From the NCBI GenBank assembly GCA_024704765.1, contig JAKMXF010000305.1:1-37056 (forward strand): a stretch of DNA of 37,056 nucleotides. The letters run 5' to 3'. Positions 12,144-19,161 of this stretch are shown piece by piece. Origin of the DNA: Oopsacas minuta (taxonomy: Eukaryota > Animalia > Porifera). Below the pieces are notes generated by a model. That model saw only the letters and a list, made by a program, of their open reading frames with translations. It was not told the origin of the DNA and did not search any database. Position numbers and translations under genes: made by a program. The first letter of the stretch is position 1. Every line of letters begins with the position of its first letter.

Positions 12144-13489
12144 GTCTTTGGGTTCCTAGCAAGCACAGCTTCGCTATTCAATTTTTTCCTGATTCCCATA
12201 AAAATATACAACAGAATTTGAATCGCACTTTAGCTTATTAGAAGATCGTATGTAAGTAATATCATACACTAGCATGCGAATTTCTCTAAGGCCACATAGA
12301 GAAATTTTTCACCACAATGGTGTGCTCAAAACTTATACTAACAAGTATGCATCTACTGTAATATAATTTTCATCTATGGCGTAAGGGATTATCTAGGTTA
12401 GTGGTTCTCAACCTTTCTGGCCTTCACCACCCATGAAGTTCAACCTCCCTTTGGGCCCCCCACCCTCTCCTCAAATAATTTGAAATTTATTTTTTAAATT
12501 CAAATTAACTGTAATCAATGCGAACCTTGTAAATGCTCATTAGATGCTAATATTTCAATATCTGGACTATAACTTGATGCTGATATCCTTAAATCTTCTC
12601 TGAAGTCAAGTCGCCTGCCGTGTTTTGACCTAAGAAATTTGCTGAAGAAAACGTTTCTCACAAAAATATGTTATTGGAAATGAAAGCAAAAGCAATCTTT
12701 CAGCTGTTTTGAAAAGCTTTGGTGTTACCTCCTTCACTAAAAACCAGAATTTAGTTTTGTTAGCACAAGAATATCTAGCTTTTGCCTCTTCATTTGCCTG
12801 TAAATATAACAACTCCTCTACTAGTATGTTGTCTAAGTCCATCATATCTTCCAGTGACATATCCATCGGGATTAGCAGGTATTTAGGGATTGATGGAACG
12901 TCCGAAAAGCGATTGGAAAATCAGTAACTAGATTCATCAAATTTTTTCTACAAGGGGAGTAAAATTAAATTCAAGATGTGGTGAAAGAGAAAGAATTGCT
13001 TCTACACCACGGGTAACTGAAAAAACATTATGACAAAAAAATGAGGCCGTTGTGATTTTTCACTTTCTTATACAGAATTTTATGAGGAATCCGAATATAC
13101 ACTCCAAAATTTTTCCTACCATTAAAATTCTTTTTACAGATTATACAAAAATTGATGAAATCAAAAAAATTCTGGCTAAAATAATTGTAACATATCTCCA
13201 TTTTTAATATATTATCGTGATTCTTCGCTGATACACTTCTTTCTAGAATTCAATTTAATTACTAGTTACCTAATATAATTGATGTTTTTAACAAATTCCT
13301 ATCCAAAATGTCATTAGCATGGCAACAAAATGAAACGTAGGAATTTACGCAATAGTTTTCAATCTAGCTAAGTAGTACTTGTATGTTATTAGATTTAGGA
13401 TATATACGCGTAATTATCGATGCTTAACCATAACTTAACTAATTATTTTTATTCCTAATATAATGTAGAACATGACCTAGCTTACCATA

Positions 13490-16431
13490 CTATGATTTAT
13501 TTATGAAATTGACGAAATTAACATCTGATACTGTGTTTAATAAGCACTCTGGAAATTTTTCATTTTCCTCTTGACATTTATATCTTGTCTCCCAAACTCT
13601 GCCAAATCTAGAATGGGCAGATTCAAATGCTTGTTCTGAAACTGATCCTAAACCCATTCCATCTGGAAGATAATTCGTGATAAACGGAATTAGGTGCCTA
13701 CATAGAACATGAACTTTTGTAGAGCAAGAAAGTCCTGATTGTTTAAATGATTGTTCAAAATGATATACTGCCATTTTGAAATCTCCCTTTATGTGTTTCC
13801 CGAAGCAAGAATCAACAACATCCCTGAATTTTACAAGTGTGATATAAGACGAATTACTCTTTGGAAACTCAAGTTCCAATACCTCCTTTGTGATTTTCCT
13901 CATTACATTACCTTCAAATGCTCCTCCATGGTAAGCACTTCTATGAATATTCAGTTTTTAGTATTGCTTCATGGTGTTCTTTTTCGTCCTCTGACATTGT
14001 GATGAGGATGGCATCGTATAACTTCTGTCCTATCCCAAGTAACAGATGTAACTCGGGAAGATTAAACATTTGCATGAAATCTACCAACCATACATTCAGT
14101 GCTTGGTGATCCTCAATACCATCGCAGTCAATTGCATGATTCTTAGAATCTCCCTGATACATATCTTGAAGCTTTTGAAACATCTCTAGATGGTGAGCAG
14201 ATGATCGTTCTTCCCACTGAACACTGTCTAAACCCCTTCTATTGTCCCAAGTACACCATATACAAGGGTGACGTCAGTTCATTATTCCCAAGCAATAACT
14301 AGCAGCTTTCAAATCTACCGTAAATGAAACGTTGTATTCTTCCATCAGCCGTTTTATCTGGTCATCTTGAAGCATAACGAAGAAGTTATAATTACACTCA
14401 GGGGCACTCGTAACCCATTGATAAACCAGGTTATCGACAGAATTATCATTCTGTAGACACACAAGTAGTTTAGTGAAACCACGACCAAAGTCTAATCTAA
14501 GCTTGAAATGAAGATCATGTCCGATTTTTCTCCGCTGATATTAAAGATCTTTTCTATCAGGGCATCGATATTGCAACATCTCACTATCCATGAGTTCCTA
14601 TATTCTGACTTGTATTTCTCTTTACTATAGTCTAGCTCAATCTGGATGCATTCGAATATTTCGTCGCACAACAAATGTCGTTCTCTATAGTAGCTATCCA
14701 TTGATGGACACGGTACTCCAACATCTCTAATAATTCGAGTTACTACCTTTAACTGCTTATTAGACAATGACATTCCTGAACACTTCAAATTCGCGATGTG
14801 AGAGAAATCCATTTTTGGTACTTTAGCTGGACGTTCGTCAGTACTGGAAGAGGAGATAGAAAGATGAAACGGATTCCCACCTGAAGTTTTAGGCAAATGA
14901 ATTGAAGGTTTGTTGTAGCTACATACATGTAATCTTTGGTATACATTATCACCAACGAATGTATCAATAGCGTTATGGTGTTCCAACATATTATGTGCGT
15001 TGGTAATCAATGTGTTTTTCAAACAGATACAGTCAAGGGACAAAAGTATTCGACCACACAAATATATTGTCATAAATTGTATACTCTTTCCCGCTCCTAT
15101 ATATTGTGTAGTTTATATTCGTAGCTGCTATCTAGTAATTTGCATAGAATAACATATGTTTTTCAGGAATTTCAAAAAAAAATTTCGATTTACACTTTTT
15201 GAAGGTGTTAATTATTAATAATTATTAGATAATTATTGATAGTCAAAATATGTGGTAATTCAAAGCCTATTAAGAATCTATAATTTCTGACTTGATATTT
15301 GAATTCTACGTAGGCGAGTTACCCCAGATTGATATTTCCAATCGAATTGAACAACTTTTACCAAAGTTATAGAAGAATTCCAATTTGTGCCACCTTTTGC
15401 CCAAGGTGGCACAAGTGGCCGCTACCAAGAAGTTATTTTGTAATTCAAGGGTTAGCATAGTCATATCATTCGAAAATAGTACTTTGGCTTATTCCTCCTA
15501 ACCCTAGTTGATTTCCTTGTAGTGGCGCTTTTTCCTGCCACCTGTGCCACTTTTTCAAAAAGTGGCACAAGTGGGACAAATTGGAATTCTTCTATAACTT
15601 TAGTAAAAGTTGTTCAATTCGATTGGAAATTTCAATCTGGGGTAACTCGCCTACGTAGAATTCAAATATCAAGTCAGAAATTATAGATTCTTAATAGGCT
15701 TTGAATTACCACATATTTGATTATCAATAATTATCTAATAATTATTCATAATTAACACCTTCAGAAAGTGTAAATCGAAAATATTTTTTTGAAATTCTTG
15801 AAAACATACGTTATTCTATGGAAATTACTAGATAGCAGCTACGAATATAGACTACACAATATATTGGAGCGGGAAAGAGTATACAATTTATGACAATATA
15901 TTTGTGTGTTCGAATACTTTTGTCCCTTGACTGTATTTATGTGGTCGAATACTTTTGTCCCTTGACTGTATGACTAACTCCAGGACTAACACGACTCGCA
16001 CATTTGTTGCGTATCTTGATCATCTTTTGAGGTGAATTGATCATTGGTCTTCCTGGGTTTATATGGATTATCGAAGATGAAGCTTGATTCTTGCGACCTA
16101 ACCTTGAACTCTCGACACACATTGAACATAAGTTCCCAATGCGGCAGGTGTTTAAGCGCGTGTTACGAATTAAGGGCCAATCATATCGTGCGGGTGTTCT
16201 CCTCGTGGTATCCACTGAAGACAGAGTAAACAAGTAGAGCTTAAAAGTATTACACACGATATAAGGGCGATTATCTTCTAAGTTATTGATTGGTCCCAAA
16301 TATTGGTTGTATAATTCACCTAACTTAGTGTCCTTTAGGTGATTATTCCTCAAAACAATTTTGCCAACTTTCGAACAACACCAGCTACAAATTCTAGTTT
16401 TTGCATGTTCATGTTTCGTTTCTTCACTCAT
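13490..16431 (-). pseudogene. Chapaev-type transposase pseudogene (~665 aa after removing the MITE)
   Basis: N-terminal H..CSWC..D..P..C..W..C..CSMC..GRP zinc-finger region; putative catalytic LDFGRG, VDLK and SEQAFESAH; HPCIWC, ELHLLLGIG, YHGGAFEGN, KVHVLCRH. Disabled by one insertion, two frameshifts and one in-frame stop. Confidence 0.85.
15030..15968. mobile_element. Tc1/mariner-type foldback MITE, copy 1 (~370-bp TIRs), with a duplicated right terminus
   Basis: TA at 15028-15029 and 15969-15970; termini CAGTCAAGGGACAAAAGTATT; arms ~15030-15400 and ~15550-15933 are near-identical inverted repeats; a second right terminus ends at 15968. Confidence 0.93.
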
Positions 16432-19161
16432 TTGCTTGAAGTGAATTAATCAATAATTACACGTAAATATCCTAAATGTAATTTCATACAAGTACTACTT
16501 AGCTAGATTGAAAACTATTGTGTAAATTCCTACGTTTTTTCATTTTGTTGCCAAGCTAATGACATTTTGGATAGGAATTTGTTAAAAACATCAATTCTAT
16601 TAGGTAACTAGTAATTAAATTGAATTCCAGAAAGAAGTATATCAGCGAAGAATCACGATAATATATTAAAAATGGGGATATGCTAAAATCATTTTAGCCA
16701 GAATTTTTTGATTTCATAGACTTTTGTATAATCTGAAAAAAATTTTAATGGTAGGAAAAATTTTTGGAGTGTATATTCGAATTCCTCATAAAATTCTGTA
16801 TAAGAAAGTGAAAGAATCTCAAGGACCTCATTTTTTTGTCATAATGTTTTTTCAGTTACCCGTGACACGTGGGAACATGTTCCATTTGTTGCTCAGTATG
16901 CGTAAACGATGAATTTCGACTTATTTTGAAATGTAGTCACATTTTCTATAGCCGCTTGAAGAAAAATCCCATCTCCCTGCAACCTAAGATTACTCAGGTT
17001 GGAGTAAGAGAAGATTTCAGTAAGATAAGCTAATTTCAGTTTGAAATAGATCGATGAAATCTCTTCTGTCTTGAAGAAATGTTTCTGATCTAGAAATTCA
17101 CATAACTGATCATAAATAGAATATACTCTTTCAAGAGCTTTTCCTCTACTAAGCTAGCGTACTTCTGTGTGGAAAAGGAGGACGTCGTGTTCTGCTTCCG
17201 AATCTCCACATAGTTTTTTTAGTATACGTTCGATCAAAGGACTTGATTTGACAAAGTTCACAACTTTGATGACGAGGTTAAGTGTTTCATGAAGTTCAGG
17301 CTGGAGATTTTTAGCAGCTAACGCCTGTTTATGAAGCATACAATGGATAAAACTGCACTGCAGTACTTCCCTTTTCAAACATCCCCAGAATCCAGTATCT
17401 CTACCAGTCATATTTCGAGCTCCATCTGTGCTAACTAACAACTTGGCTTAAACTAATCTGATGTGAGTCAAAATAGGATCTAACCATCTTGAAGATATCT
17501 TGTCCAGTGCAACGACATTCAAAATAATCAACGAAAAGCAATTCTTCCTTTATGCAATCGTTATCGATGAAACGCATACAGACAATAAGAGTAGAGTCTG
17601 CTCCAAATGTTGATTCATCTAATTGACCGCTGATAGGAATATCCTTTATAAGCCGAATCAATTTATCTTCTAAATTCTCCTTTTATGTATTATTAGATAA
17701 CGGGATTTGTCTAGTTTCTCAGCTGCCGCACTTCCCAGAACATGCTTGGCACAAGTCAACAGTGATACTTGATTAGAGTTTCTGCATCTCTATAAGGTTT
17801 TTTAAGCTTTGCGATTAGAAAAGATACTTCATAGGATGCCAAATCACAACATCTCAAATTGGCAGACTGAGTGAAGAGAGAAAAAGATTTTAGTTGATTC
17901 GAATAAACTTTCTTTTTCTACGAAAAGTGCTCTATTGGCTACCCCACTTTTGTGGGATGTTTTGAAAATTGATGCACTTTTAAATGATGAGGCCTCATAG
18001 AATCATTCGCCAAGCATACATGGTAGGTCAAGCAAAGAGGTTTTAATGCGTCTGGACTAGAAATGAATCCAAACTGCAGATAAGAGGGATAATAATGTCG
18101 ATTTCTGCGTTTTGCATTTGTTTCGGACATAATCTTCTGATTGTATAATAAGGTCTTGCAATGATAGGATTGAAAATCAATTAATTTGGATACAGTTCTC
18201 TGTTGTATTTATGTAGATTGTAAAATGAAAATTGTATCGATCAGTAGGATGCCGTAATATTCACATTATTGGAATTCACACATCGATTACGTATGCACAA
18301 TTGAATACATAGTCTTTATTGTCATACAAAAGCAATTTATATTTGTCAGATGCATGACATCTTTTTCGAACCCTTACATTGTAGCGCTTACATAGTATTA
18401 ATTTGTATTTCTATAAGCTCATTATGCATTTAATGAGCGAAATTTCGCTAGAACATATCAGATTAAAACATTCCCAGCAATCTTTTCAGGATAATCTTAA
18501 CTATCATAGTCATAGCGTTATTTCAGGTATACTGTCATATGCCATTTAAAATATTCGCAGTATAGCCAGAATATGTAGTTGTATATTTAGTGGTGTTTAA
18601 ATAATTATGTTCTGTTGTATATCTATAGGAATATACTGAAAACTACCGTTTTCTGCATGAAATACATAATAATCCAAATAATGTATGCAAACTAATGCAA
18701 TGCTCCCATAAAAGTCATATTATTTATATTTCTGGAAGCATTAAGGGCCAATTATTTCTCAGAGGTCATGAGTTCATTCAAATAATCATATAAGAAGTTG
18801 AAAGCACTTCCTATTGATTCGTATGCCTTAGTTAGGCTTCCTAAAGCGTGTCAATATATAAAAACACAACAGGGGCGGATCCAGTATTTTCTTAGGGGGT
18901 CCATTCGCGAGTGTAGCGAGCGTTTCTGATGGGGGGTCTGGGCCCCCAGAAAAAATTGAATATTTAGACACTGAAATAGCGATCTAAAGACATTCATTCC
19001 TACAGCAAATAGAGAAATAATTTCAAATTTATTCTTCTTTTATTCATTATTTTTGGGACAGAAAATTCAATACCGCACTCAAGTTTGGGTTCCATTTTGT
19101 TTCTCGATATGTTGGAGGTACAAAGATAATCATACAAAATACTTTTATAACTATTGTGGTG

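Follow-up and report, generated by a model that had tools for sequence, protein, structure and literature searches.

An inactivated transposon in the sponge Oopsacas minuta, very probably of the Chapaev group, and its intact relatives with a RAG1/Transib-like predicted core

Does the transposon at positions 13008-16864 of Oopsacas minuta contig JAKMXF010000305.1, the remains of which encode a RAG1-like N-terminal zinc finger followed by a Transib/RAG1-type core, belong to the Chapaev group, to the lineage of Transib and RAG1, or to neither? The stretch of DNA analysed here (the window; 37,056 nt, positions 1 to 37,056 of the contig, GenBank assembly GCA_024704765.1) had been described in a first-pass annotation, made from the sequence alone, as containing a Chapaev-type element of this composition. 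The position of Chapaev itself is disputed: the group is said to have been placed in CMC by Yuan and Wessler and in a 'Transib superfamily' by Kapitonov and Koonin. We find that the segment, read on the minus strand, is a decayed copy of a 2.9-kb DNA transposon and very probably a cut-and-paste element of the Chapaev group, with naturally intact relatives in the same genome and a transposase core whose predicted fold is that of RAG1 and Transib.

The limits of the element can be read directly in the sequence. It starts with CACGGGTAACTG... at 13008, and the reverse complement of this sequence finishes at 16864. The termini (CACGGGT...ACCCGTG) are perfectly paired over their outermost 27 nt, where 0 such matches are expected (100 shuffles), and they form the tips of long terminal inverted repeats (TIRs) bordered on both sides by the same 4-bp duplication of the target site (TSD; Table 1). 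The coordinates given in the first-pass annotation are correct, and the CAC...GTG termini and the 4-bp TSD that it reported are both present, with ACAC on either side; the open reading frame (ORF) runs on the minus strand. A search for subterminal repeats in the TIR gave none that was convincing.

The reading frame of the window copy is broken into four pieces. As the reference for all ORF comparisons we used a natural intact paralogue, P0114 (KAI6661451.1; 667 aa), which is encoded in the same O. minuta genome. The four pieces jointly span its residues 1-667 with 92-98% identity (86% in the high-scoring segment pair that enters residues derived from a nested miniature inverted-repeat transposable element, MITE), in good agreement with the transposase of about 665 aa that had been estimated. 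All the motifs listed earlier were found by codon, both in the core (LDFGRG with D334, VDLK with D393, PCIWC with C410/C413, KVHVLCRH with H595/H600 and SEQAFES with E620) and in the N-terminal part (H7, C15-x2-C18, P56, C60-x2-F63, C102-x2-C105 and GRP at 127-129). Compared with the intact paralogue, the window copy has acquired the nested 939-bp MITE, two frameshifts and one stop codon, and has lost two zinc ligands by substitution (C63F and C141R). These lesions, of which the segment 15030-15970, the frameshifts and the stop had already been located, mean that the window copy, judged from its reading frame, cannot make a transposase and is non-autonomous; taken by itself, it is ordinary genomic debris. 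The C-x2-F motif and the knuckle without its first cysteine had been flagged as degenerate positions; both are real in the window copy and confined to it, the intact paralogue having C63 and C141.

Table 1. Features of the element, its reading frame and its lesions (positions in the window)
Feature	Position	Strand	Remarks
TIR, element 3' end	13008..13421	-	...ACCCGTG terminus on minus strand; about 415 nt, 92.8% identical to other arm
TIR, element 5' end	16449..16864	-	CACGGGTAACTG... terminus on minus strand
TSD ACAC, left copy	13004..13007		same letters as 16865-16868
TSD ACAC, right copy	16865..16868		read in sequence
ORF piece 1, residues 1-154	15970..16431	-	putative Chapa-like zinc module with H7, C15, C18, P56, C60, F63, C96, C102, C105; GRP 127-129; knuckle R141, C144, H154
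ORF piece 2, residues 155 to about 324	14522..15028	-	linker and start of the RAG1-like predicted core; frame from 15028 reads ICLKNTLITN...
ORF piece 3, residues 325-512	13956..14519	-	D334 (14490-2), D393 (14313-5), C410 (14262-4), C413 (14253-5), L481-H482 (14046-51); 96.8% to P0114 (tblastn)
ORF piece 4, residues 513-667 and natural stop	13490..13957	-	H595 (13709-11), H600 (13694-6), E620 (13634-6); 98.1% to P0114 (tblastn)
Nested MITE of foldback type (939 bp; arms of about 370 nt)	15030..15968		TA duplication 15028-9 and 15969-70; foreign to the putative Chapaev element
Frameshift, 1 nt missing relative to intact copy	14520..14521		alignment to L005; extra letter behind 14520 in 3/4 runs
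Frameshift, 2 nt missing relative to intact copy	13954..13960		alignment to L005; 2 extra letters behind 13954 in 4/4 runs
Premature TGA at Gly406 position	14274..14276	-	G in P0114 and in the L002/L003 relatives; C at 14276 (GGA) in 4/4 runs

The genome of O. minuta contains better preserved members of the same family. At locus L005, an element of 2928 bp with TIRs of about 430 bp (arms 97.9% identical) carries one intron-less ORF of 2004 bp encoding 667 aa; the DNA of the window copy matches it with 96.8% identity, and comparison of five copies of the family in pairs gave DNA identities of 95.5-98.8%, i.e., a difference of 1.2-4.5%. A cluster look-up at an identity threshold of at least 90% returned 26 protein variants in GenBank, all of them named 'hypothetical protein LOD99_*' and one of them the intact P0114. 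A second family, with about 60% protein identity to the first, is represented by intact ORFs of 661 aa (P0123, P0125 and P0127), so that intact copies exist in two families of this sponge. A copy of this second family at L009 925-3753 has termini CACGGGTCTCTC..., a TIR of about 164-245 nt and the flanks TTAG/ACAC. Contigs from four public runs of one sample were also aligned to the element. Their high-depth form lacks the MITE, has glycine in place of the stop and has the bases restored at both frameshifts (at the 1-nt site in three of the four runs); the junction 15027>15969, in which 941 nt are skipped, occurs in contigs of all four runs and joins ...SPGVSH in frame with ICLKNT..., as in the relatives. 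Since the majority form of the family in the runs is free of the ORF lesions of the window copy, it is fair to describe the latter as a copy disabled not long ago, in a family that is live or was so until recently, a description for which its identity to the intact copy also speaks. Judging from these sequences, the family is apparently resident and recently active in O. minuta.

These data bear directly on the suggestion that the ORF is a domesticated host gene, or the pseudogene of one, with inverted repeats that are incidental. The intact paralogues are labelled as hypothetical proteins by NCBI, and two N-terminal fragments are automatically named 'ZAD domain-containing protein' in UniRef, which would fit with host genes. 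The copies, however, lie at many unrelated loci, with the same 415-bp TIRs and different 4-bp duplications, and they are 95-99% identical to each other while decaying independently. This multi-copy TIR/TSD structure refutes the host-gene explanation, to which we assign practically no probability; the window element belongs to a TIR-bounded, TSD-generating, multi-copy family with one ORF.

To which group this family belongs can be asked with the published hallmarks of Chapaev, namely 5'-CAC...GTG-3' termini, a TSD of 3-4 bp and a DDE transposase with the motifs C(2)C, LH and H(4)H (PMC4079192, motifs quoted from Yuan and Wessler, 2011). We surveyed the ends of 11 copies, which represent three sponge families (the window copy with L005-L008; L009; L010-L014). 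The third family comes from five contigs (230-530x) of the ENA metaMDBG assembly ERZ25071281, the host of which is probably another sponge; its element of 2616 bp has perfect TIR cores of 128 bp, and its five copies agree with 99.9% identity and all encode the same intact protein of 666 aa (P0131). From this uniformity, the family looks currently or very recently active. Ends of the form CACGGG...CCCGTG are present in the window copy, L005-L008, L009 and L010-L014; all three families start with CACGGGT, and two of them have their first 12 nt in common. A perfect 4-bp TSD was found in 8 of the 11 copies: ACAC (window), ATAA (L006), AAGC (L007) and ATCG (L008) in the window family, ATTT (L010), AGCC (L011), AGTA (L013) and TTAA (L014) in the third. 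As the chance of each such duplication is 1/256, the length of the TSD can be considered settled. A duplication of another length in other copies would have spoken against the first-pass classification; the remaining copies have no clean TSD, and 5 bp, the length typical of Transib and RAG1-like (RAGL) elements, was seen in none of the 11. In this small sample, six of the eight clean TSDs have A as their first base when read in the orientation of the element (ATAA, AAGC, ATCG, ATTT, AGCC and AGTA), which may reflect a weak target preference.

The core of the protein carries the expected motifs. Among 17 full-length relatives, the residues K330, D334, G336, K341, E365, D393, K395, C410, C413, R429, P479, L481, H482 and G528 (numbered as in P0114) are invariant, and among 29 cores, several of them partial, D393, K395, C410, C413, R429, H482 and G528 are still invariant; K593, H595 and H600 are nearly so, and a SEQAxES motif (E620, E624) is conserved. 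In these two alignments, the three Chapaev motifs, C410-x2-C413, L481-H482 and H595-x4-H600, are therefore invariant or nearly so. The spacing of the residues in P0114 is D393-17-C410-x2-C413 and H595-x4-H600-20-E620. In RAG1, the corresponding spacing is D708-19-C727-x2-C730 and H937-x4-H942-20-E962. We infer that D334, D393 and E620 are the catalytic residues on an RNase H fold and, by analogy with RAG1, that C410/C413 and H595/H600 would be the counterpart of its ZnC2/ZnH2 zinc site. The first two catalytic aspartates are 59 residues apart in the sponge core, as opposed to 108 in RAG1.

The strongest resemblance to RAG1 appears in the predicted structure. The AlphaFold2 model of the core (residues 227-667 of P0114, 441 aa, computed from the 29-sequence alignment) has a mean predicted local distance difference test score (pLDDT) of 92.5 and a predicted template-modelling (TM) score of 0.89. 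A Foldseek search of the PDB with this model gave 49 matches at E<=1e-3, every one of them to RAG1, amphioxus BbRAGL or HzTransib (best E 2.9e-12; TM, taken by query, reaching 0.71); behind these, the closest match stands at E 0.047. In VIA-align comparisons, the Z score is 23.8 for RAG1 (413/441 residues, root-mean-square deviation 3.9 Å, RAG1 462-1001), 23.5 for HzTransib (368 residues, HzTransib 24-476) and 21.4 for BbRAGL (ProtoRAG), compared with 13.2 for the P element transposase, 9.5 for ISCth4, 8.8 for Hermes and about 5 for retroviral integrases. It is thus strongly supported, at the level of models, that the core of this Chapaev-type sponge protein shares the fold of RAG1 and HzTransib, clearly apart from those of the P element and hAT transposases. 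The whole 441-aa core superposes on the known structures (4WWX, 6XNY, 6B40, 6PQX), with 11-15% sequence identity and no match at the level of hidden Markov models. Among the predicted folds of the ESM Atlas, the nearest (TM 0.80-0.88) belong to cnidarian and poriferan clusters that have no annotation, to C2H2-finger clusters, to a cluster of nematode DUF1280 proteins and to one from arthropods with PF26100 (RAG1_RNase_H), the latter two both at TM 0.80.

Sequence comparisons of the core point in another direction. The Pfam families RAG1 and RAG1_RNase_H gave no match at E<=1 with the pieces and the full-length relatives, nor at E<=10 with the 29 cores, and a profile of the 17 full-length relatives run against PDB sequences found neither RAG1 nor Transib. 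Searches of Pfam and of PDB sequences with the window pieces themselves gave no informative match. The only Pfam families weakly matched by the cores are DUF1280 (5/29, best 3e-5), DUF1258 and Transposase_21/tnp2 (1/29, 0.023), all below the gathering scores. Transposase_21 (tnp2) is a family of CACTA/En-Spm elements, and DUF1280 and DUF1258 are families of nematodes; neither these elements nor these families have a Chapa module, and the nematode DUF1280 cluster shares the fold of the sponge core. The core would therefore lean to CMC by sequence and have the fold of RAG1 and Transib; the 'Transib/RAG1-type core' of the first-pass annotation stands as a statement on fold and is not supported as one on sequence. 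Three distant relatives (P0064, P0068 and P0073) also have weak matches to DUF1280 and DUF1258. These two families may be remnants of CMC/Mirage-type transposases, DUF1280 conceivably deriving from those of the Mirage type.

One could nevertheless propose that the element is a Transib proper, or a member of a RAG1L-like lineage, and that its Chapa-like N-terminus is a lineage-specific addition. The core fits HzTransib as well as it fits RAG1, a RAG1_RNase_H cluster is among its ESM Atlas neighbours, and the termini start with CAC, like the heptamers of recombination signal sequences (RSSs) and of Transib. The TSD, however, is of 4 bp in most copies instead of the 5 bp of Transib and RAGL elements, no RAG1 family of Pfam and no RAG1 or Transib sequence of the PDB is matched even with profiles, and the weak sequence affinities are all on the CMC side. 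Moreover, Transib N-termini have been reported to lack an NZD-like domain, i.e., one resembling the N-terminal zinc domain (NZD) of RAG1 (Hong et al., 2026; bioRxiv 10.64898/2026.01.24.700457). There is also no RAG2-like ORF. This feature of ProtoRAG/RAGL elements and the other one, a RING finger, were both looked for in the intact 2928-bp element and not found: no RING pattern or Pfam RING match occurs in the transposase, and there is no room for a second gene because two TIRs of about 430 bp and the 2004-bp ORF fill the element. The absence of both had been correctly noticed from the window copy. Finally, no NBD is recognisable in the sponge protein and, compared with RSSs, no heptamer-spacer-nonamer arrangement is conserved between the sponge families beyond CACGGGT. 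An A-rich block behind the terminal heptamer was considered as an analogue of the nonamer and dropped, as the two other sponge families lack such a block. Altogether, we regard an assignment to Transib or to a RAG1L-like lineage as very unlikely.

The N-terminal region provides a further argument for Chapaev. All 15 aligned N-termini share H7, C15, C18, P56, C60, C63, C102, C105, C144, H154 and C156, and C141 is nearly invariant. The layout of the ligands, H-x7-C(R)xC ... PxxxCxxC ... C-x5-CxxC, is the same as in the published Chapa/RAG1 alignment (Additional file 5 of Kapitonov and Koonin, 2015; PMC4411706). It also agrees with the arrangement of ligands in the RAG1 NZD, where ZFa is formed by C110/C113/C175/C178 and ZFb by H102/H206/C210/C213 (Hong et al., 2026). 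This pattern suggests a two-zinc Chapa/NZD-like module, probably with a ZAD-like C4 site (C15/C18/C60/C63) and a second site (H7/C96/C102/C105) in which C96 probably stands in place of the RAG1 histidine H206. The order of the ligands (an N-terminal His, CxxC, a second CxxC and a C-terminal cluster ending with CxxC) is one that the sponge module shares with the RAG1 NZD and ZAD domains (1PZW, 7POK, 7PO9); vertebrate RAG1 differs by an H2 helix insertion that the sponge module lacks.

The model of the N-terminal region is moderately confident (pLDDT 76). A Foldseek search with it returned nothing significant, its top row being the ZAD of Pita at E 1.9, and in a VIA search the first five rows are all ZAD domains, the fit being best but weak for residues 13-76 (1PZW, Z 4.8). 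Pfam zf-AD is matched by 6 of the 15 N-termini (best E 1.3e-4) and RAG1_imp_bd by one (E 0.018, on the H..CRxCG segment), all below threshold; the profile of full-length relatives likewise found only ZAD domains among PDB sequences, again below threshold. The solved fold nearest to ZFa of the RAG1 NZD is a ZAD, and the Chapa domains of Chapaev adopt the NZD architecture (Hong et al., 2026); our model-based results are coherent with this picture, and the RAG1-like N-terminal finger of the first-pass annotation is supported by ligand layout and ZAD-like predicted fold. The Chapa module is followed by a GRP motif, a C2HC knuckle (C141, C144, H154, C156) and a helical linker. An exhaustive VIA search found no structural counterpart for the segment with the GRP motif and the knuckle.

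The joining of such a finger to such a core had been put forward as bearing on how RAG1 was assembled, and the element as a candidate for an undescribed family. A Chapa finger in front of a distant Transib/RAG1-like core is the architecture already published for Chapaev (Kapitonov and Koonin, 2015; Hong et al., 2026) and not an unusual chimera, and the proteins are already present in GenBank as hypothetical ones. The Chapaev elements of Repbase (Chapaev-1/2_BF, Chapaev-1/2_NV, Chapaev_HM and Chapaev_ACa), with which we compared the sponge element by description, have the same CAC...GTG termini, 4-bp TSD and single transposase ORF, the same DDE with C(2)C, LH and H(4)H and the same Chapa layout (H-x7-CRxC ... 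PxxxCxxC ... CxxC). The sponge element differs by its hexactinellid host, its very long TIRs (about 415-430 bp), the lack of a RING finger and the GRP motif and C2HC knuckle that follow the Chapa module.

These differences could be taken to indicate a separate, unnamed lineage located between CMC/Chapaev and Transib/RAG1, with hallmarks of both and membership in neither. Relatives are indeed rare: a profile of the core piece gave only 87 matches at E<=1e-3, about 10 of them full length, among 1.84 billion representative proteins. One of the matches, the 670-aa protein P0092, led through a word search to the O. minuta proteins. A word search with a 193-aa piece found only three broken relatives, the full-length kin being outside its length window; a profile word search added only close relatives, none bearing the name of a transposon, and an ESM Atlas feature search with the window pieces remained blank. 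A distinct lineage would fit with this rarity and lack of names, with the GRP and knuckle domain that matched nothing and with the non-bilaterian hosts. However, all the published Chapaev hallmarks tested are present in the sponge element, and the missing names, which reflect the poor annotation of eukaryotic transposases, are uninformative, since the set searched does not include Repbase entries. We thus consider a lineage of this kind improbable and retain Chapaev as by far the better assignment.

Several observations weigh against our assignment and its connection to RAG1. Membership in Chapaev is argued from hallmarks and not from a tree, and the named Chapaev references were compared by description only. 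No clean 4-bp TSD is found in three of the 11 copies, namely L005 (GTAT/TATA), L012 (irregular) and L009. The core has no link to RAG1 or Transib by sequence or profile in Pfam and among PDB sequences, and the equivalence of its D/D/E and zinc ligands with those of RAG1 is deduced from spacing and not from superposition. The likeness of the N-terminal region to the RAG1 NZD (21WB) consists of the ligand pattern, the ZAD-like fold of a model with pLDDT 76 and sub-threshold Pfam matches.

A plausible mode of transposition can be proposed by analogy with related systems. The transposase would bind the TIRs, recognising the terminal CACGGGT together with internal TIR sequence; D334, D393 and E620 would coordinate the catalytic metals, and C410/C413/H595/H600 would form a structural zinc site. 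Cleavage would take place at the CAC ends, probably via a hairpin on the flank as in RAG, Transib and hAT, and integration would occur with a 4-bp stagger. As the models indicate, the ORF encodes a DDE enzyme on an RNase H fold, with the architecture of RAG1/Transib and with zinc modules at its N-terminus. The window copy could still be mobilised in trans by intact copies, as both its 27-nt termini are perfect.

The Chapa domain has been described as common to Chapaev, TransibSU and RAG1, and within the Transib superfamily Chapaev has been placed as a distant clade (Kapitonov and Koonin, 2015). More recently, type I and type II Chapa folds have been distinguished, and the Chapaev core has been found less similar to RAG1 (Hong et al., 2026). 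In the searchable literature, we found neither a report of Chapaev in sponges nor a study in which the structure of a Chapaev core is compared with that of RAG1 or Transib; the paper on the genome of O. minuta mentions only 'Other (Mirage, P-element, Transib)', amounting to 1.22% of the genome, and no Chapaev. The core model presented here is a structural argument for grouping Chapaev with Transib and RAG1, which is disputed. It is conceivable, although we consider it rather unlikely, that the sponge Chapaevs preserve an ancestral state of the RAG1 lineage, in which the NZD/Chapa module was already joined to a complete RAG1-type core (from the DDBD through the CTD equivalent) in a non-bilaterian. 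If true, this would speak for one ancient fusion that preceded the split of Chapaev, Transib and RAG, as in the model of Kapitonov and Koonin, rather than for separate gains of the NZD by RAG1 and Chapaev, as in that of Hong et al., and CMC and Transib would belong to one structural superfamily. On this reading, the segment made up of the GRP motif, the knuckle and the helices could also correspond to the ZFA/NBD of RAG1.

The family is more important than the window copy, as a natural system for questions on Chapaev and on the origin of RAG1. Naturally intact and apparently recently active Chapaevs are available, with ORFs of 667 and 661 aa in O. minuta and, in the related assembly, five nearly identical copies of 666 aa, so that the biochemistry of a Chapaev transposase needs no reconstruction. 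The family also offers a tractable system for studying the role of a RAG1-type N-terminal zinc domain in a transposase, an open limitation according to Hong et al. (2026).

Some minor observations can be added. A complete relative of 679 aa (P0016), with Chapa module, GRP motif, knuckle and core, is present in the transcriptome of the rotosphaerid protist Pompholyxophrys punicea (EukProt EP00733); it could be genuine or come from prey or contamination and, if genuine, would extend Chapaev-like elements outside Metazoa. The nested MITE has the ends CAGTCAAGGGACAAAAGTATTCG..., with a 35-nt tandem duplication of one end at 15899-15968; word depth in the four runs is 1e4 to 4e5 for the MITE, compared with 1e2 to 3e3 for the Chapaev element, and the MITE is probably among the most abundant repeats of the O. 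minuta genome. Other mobile elements adjoin copies of the family or of its relatives, namely a fragment of an rve integrase at L002 4509-5480, next to the copy of a relative, and a mariner-type Transposase_1 ORF at L008 52-1125. Directly beside the insertion in the window, an ORF on the plus strand (16869-17030) begins with MGTCSICCSVC...KCSHIF and has a weak RING-like match (PF17123, E 0.004), suggesting that the Chapaev copy may have inserted at the 5' margin of a gene of RING/TRIM type.

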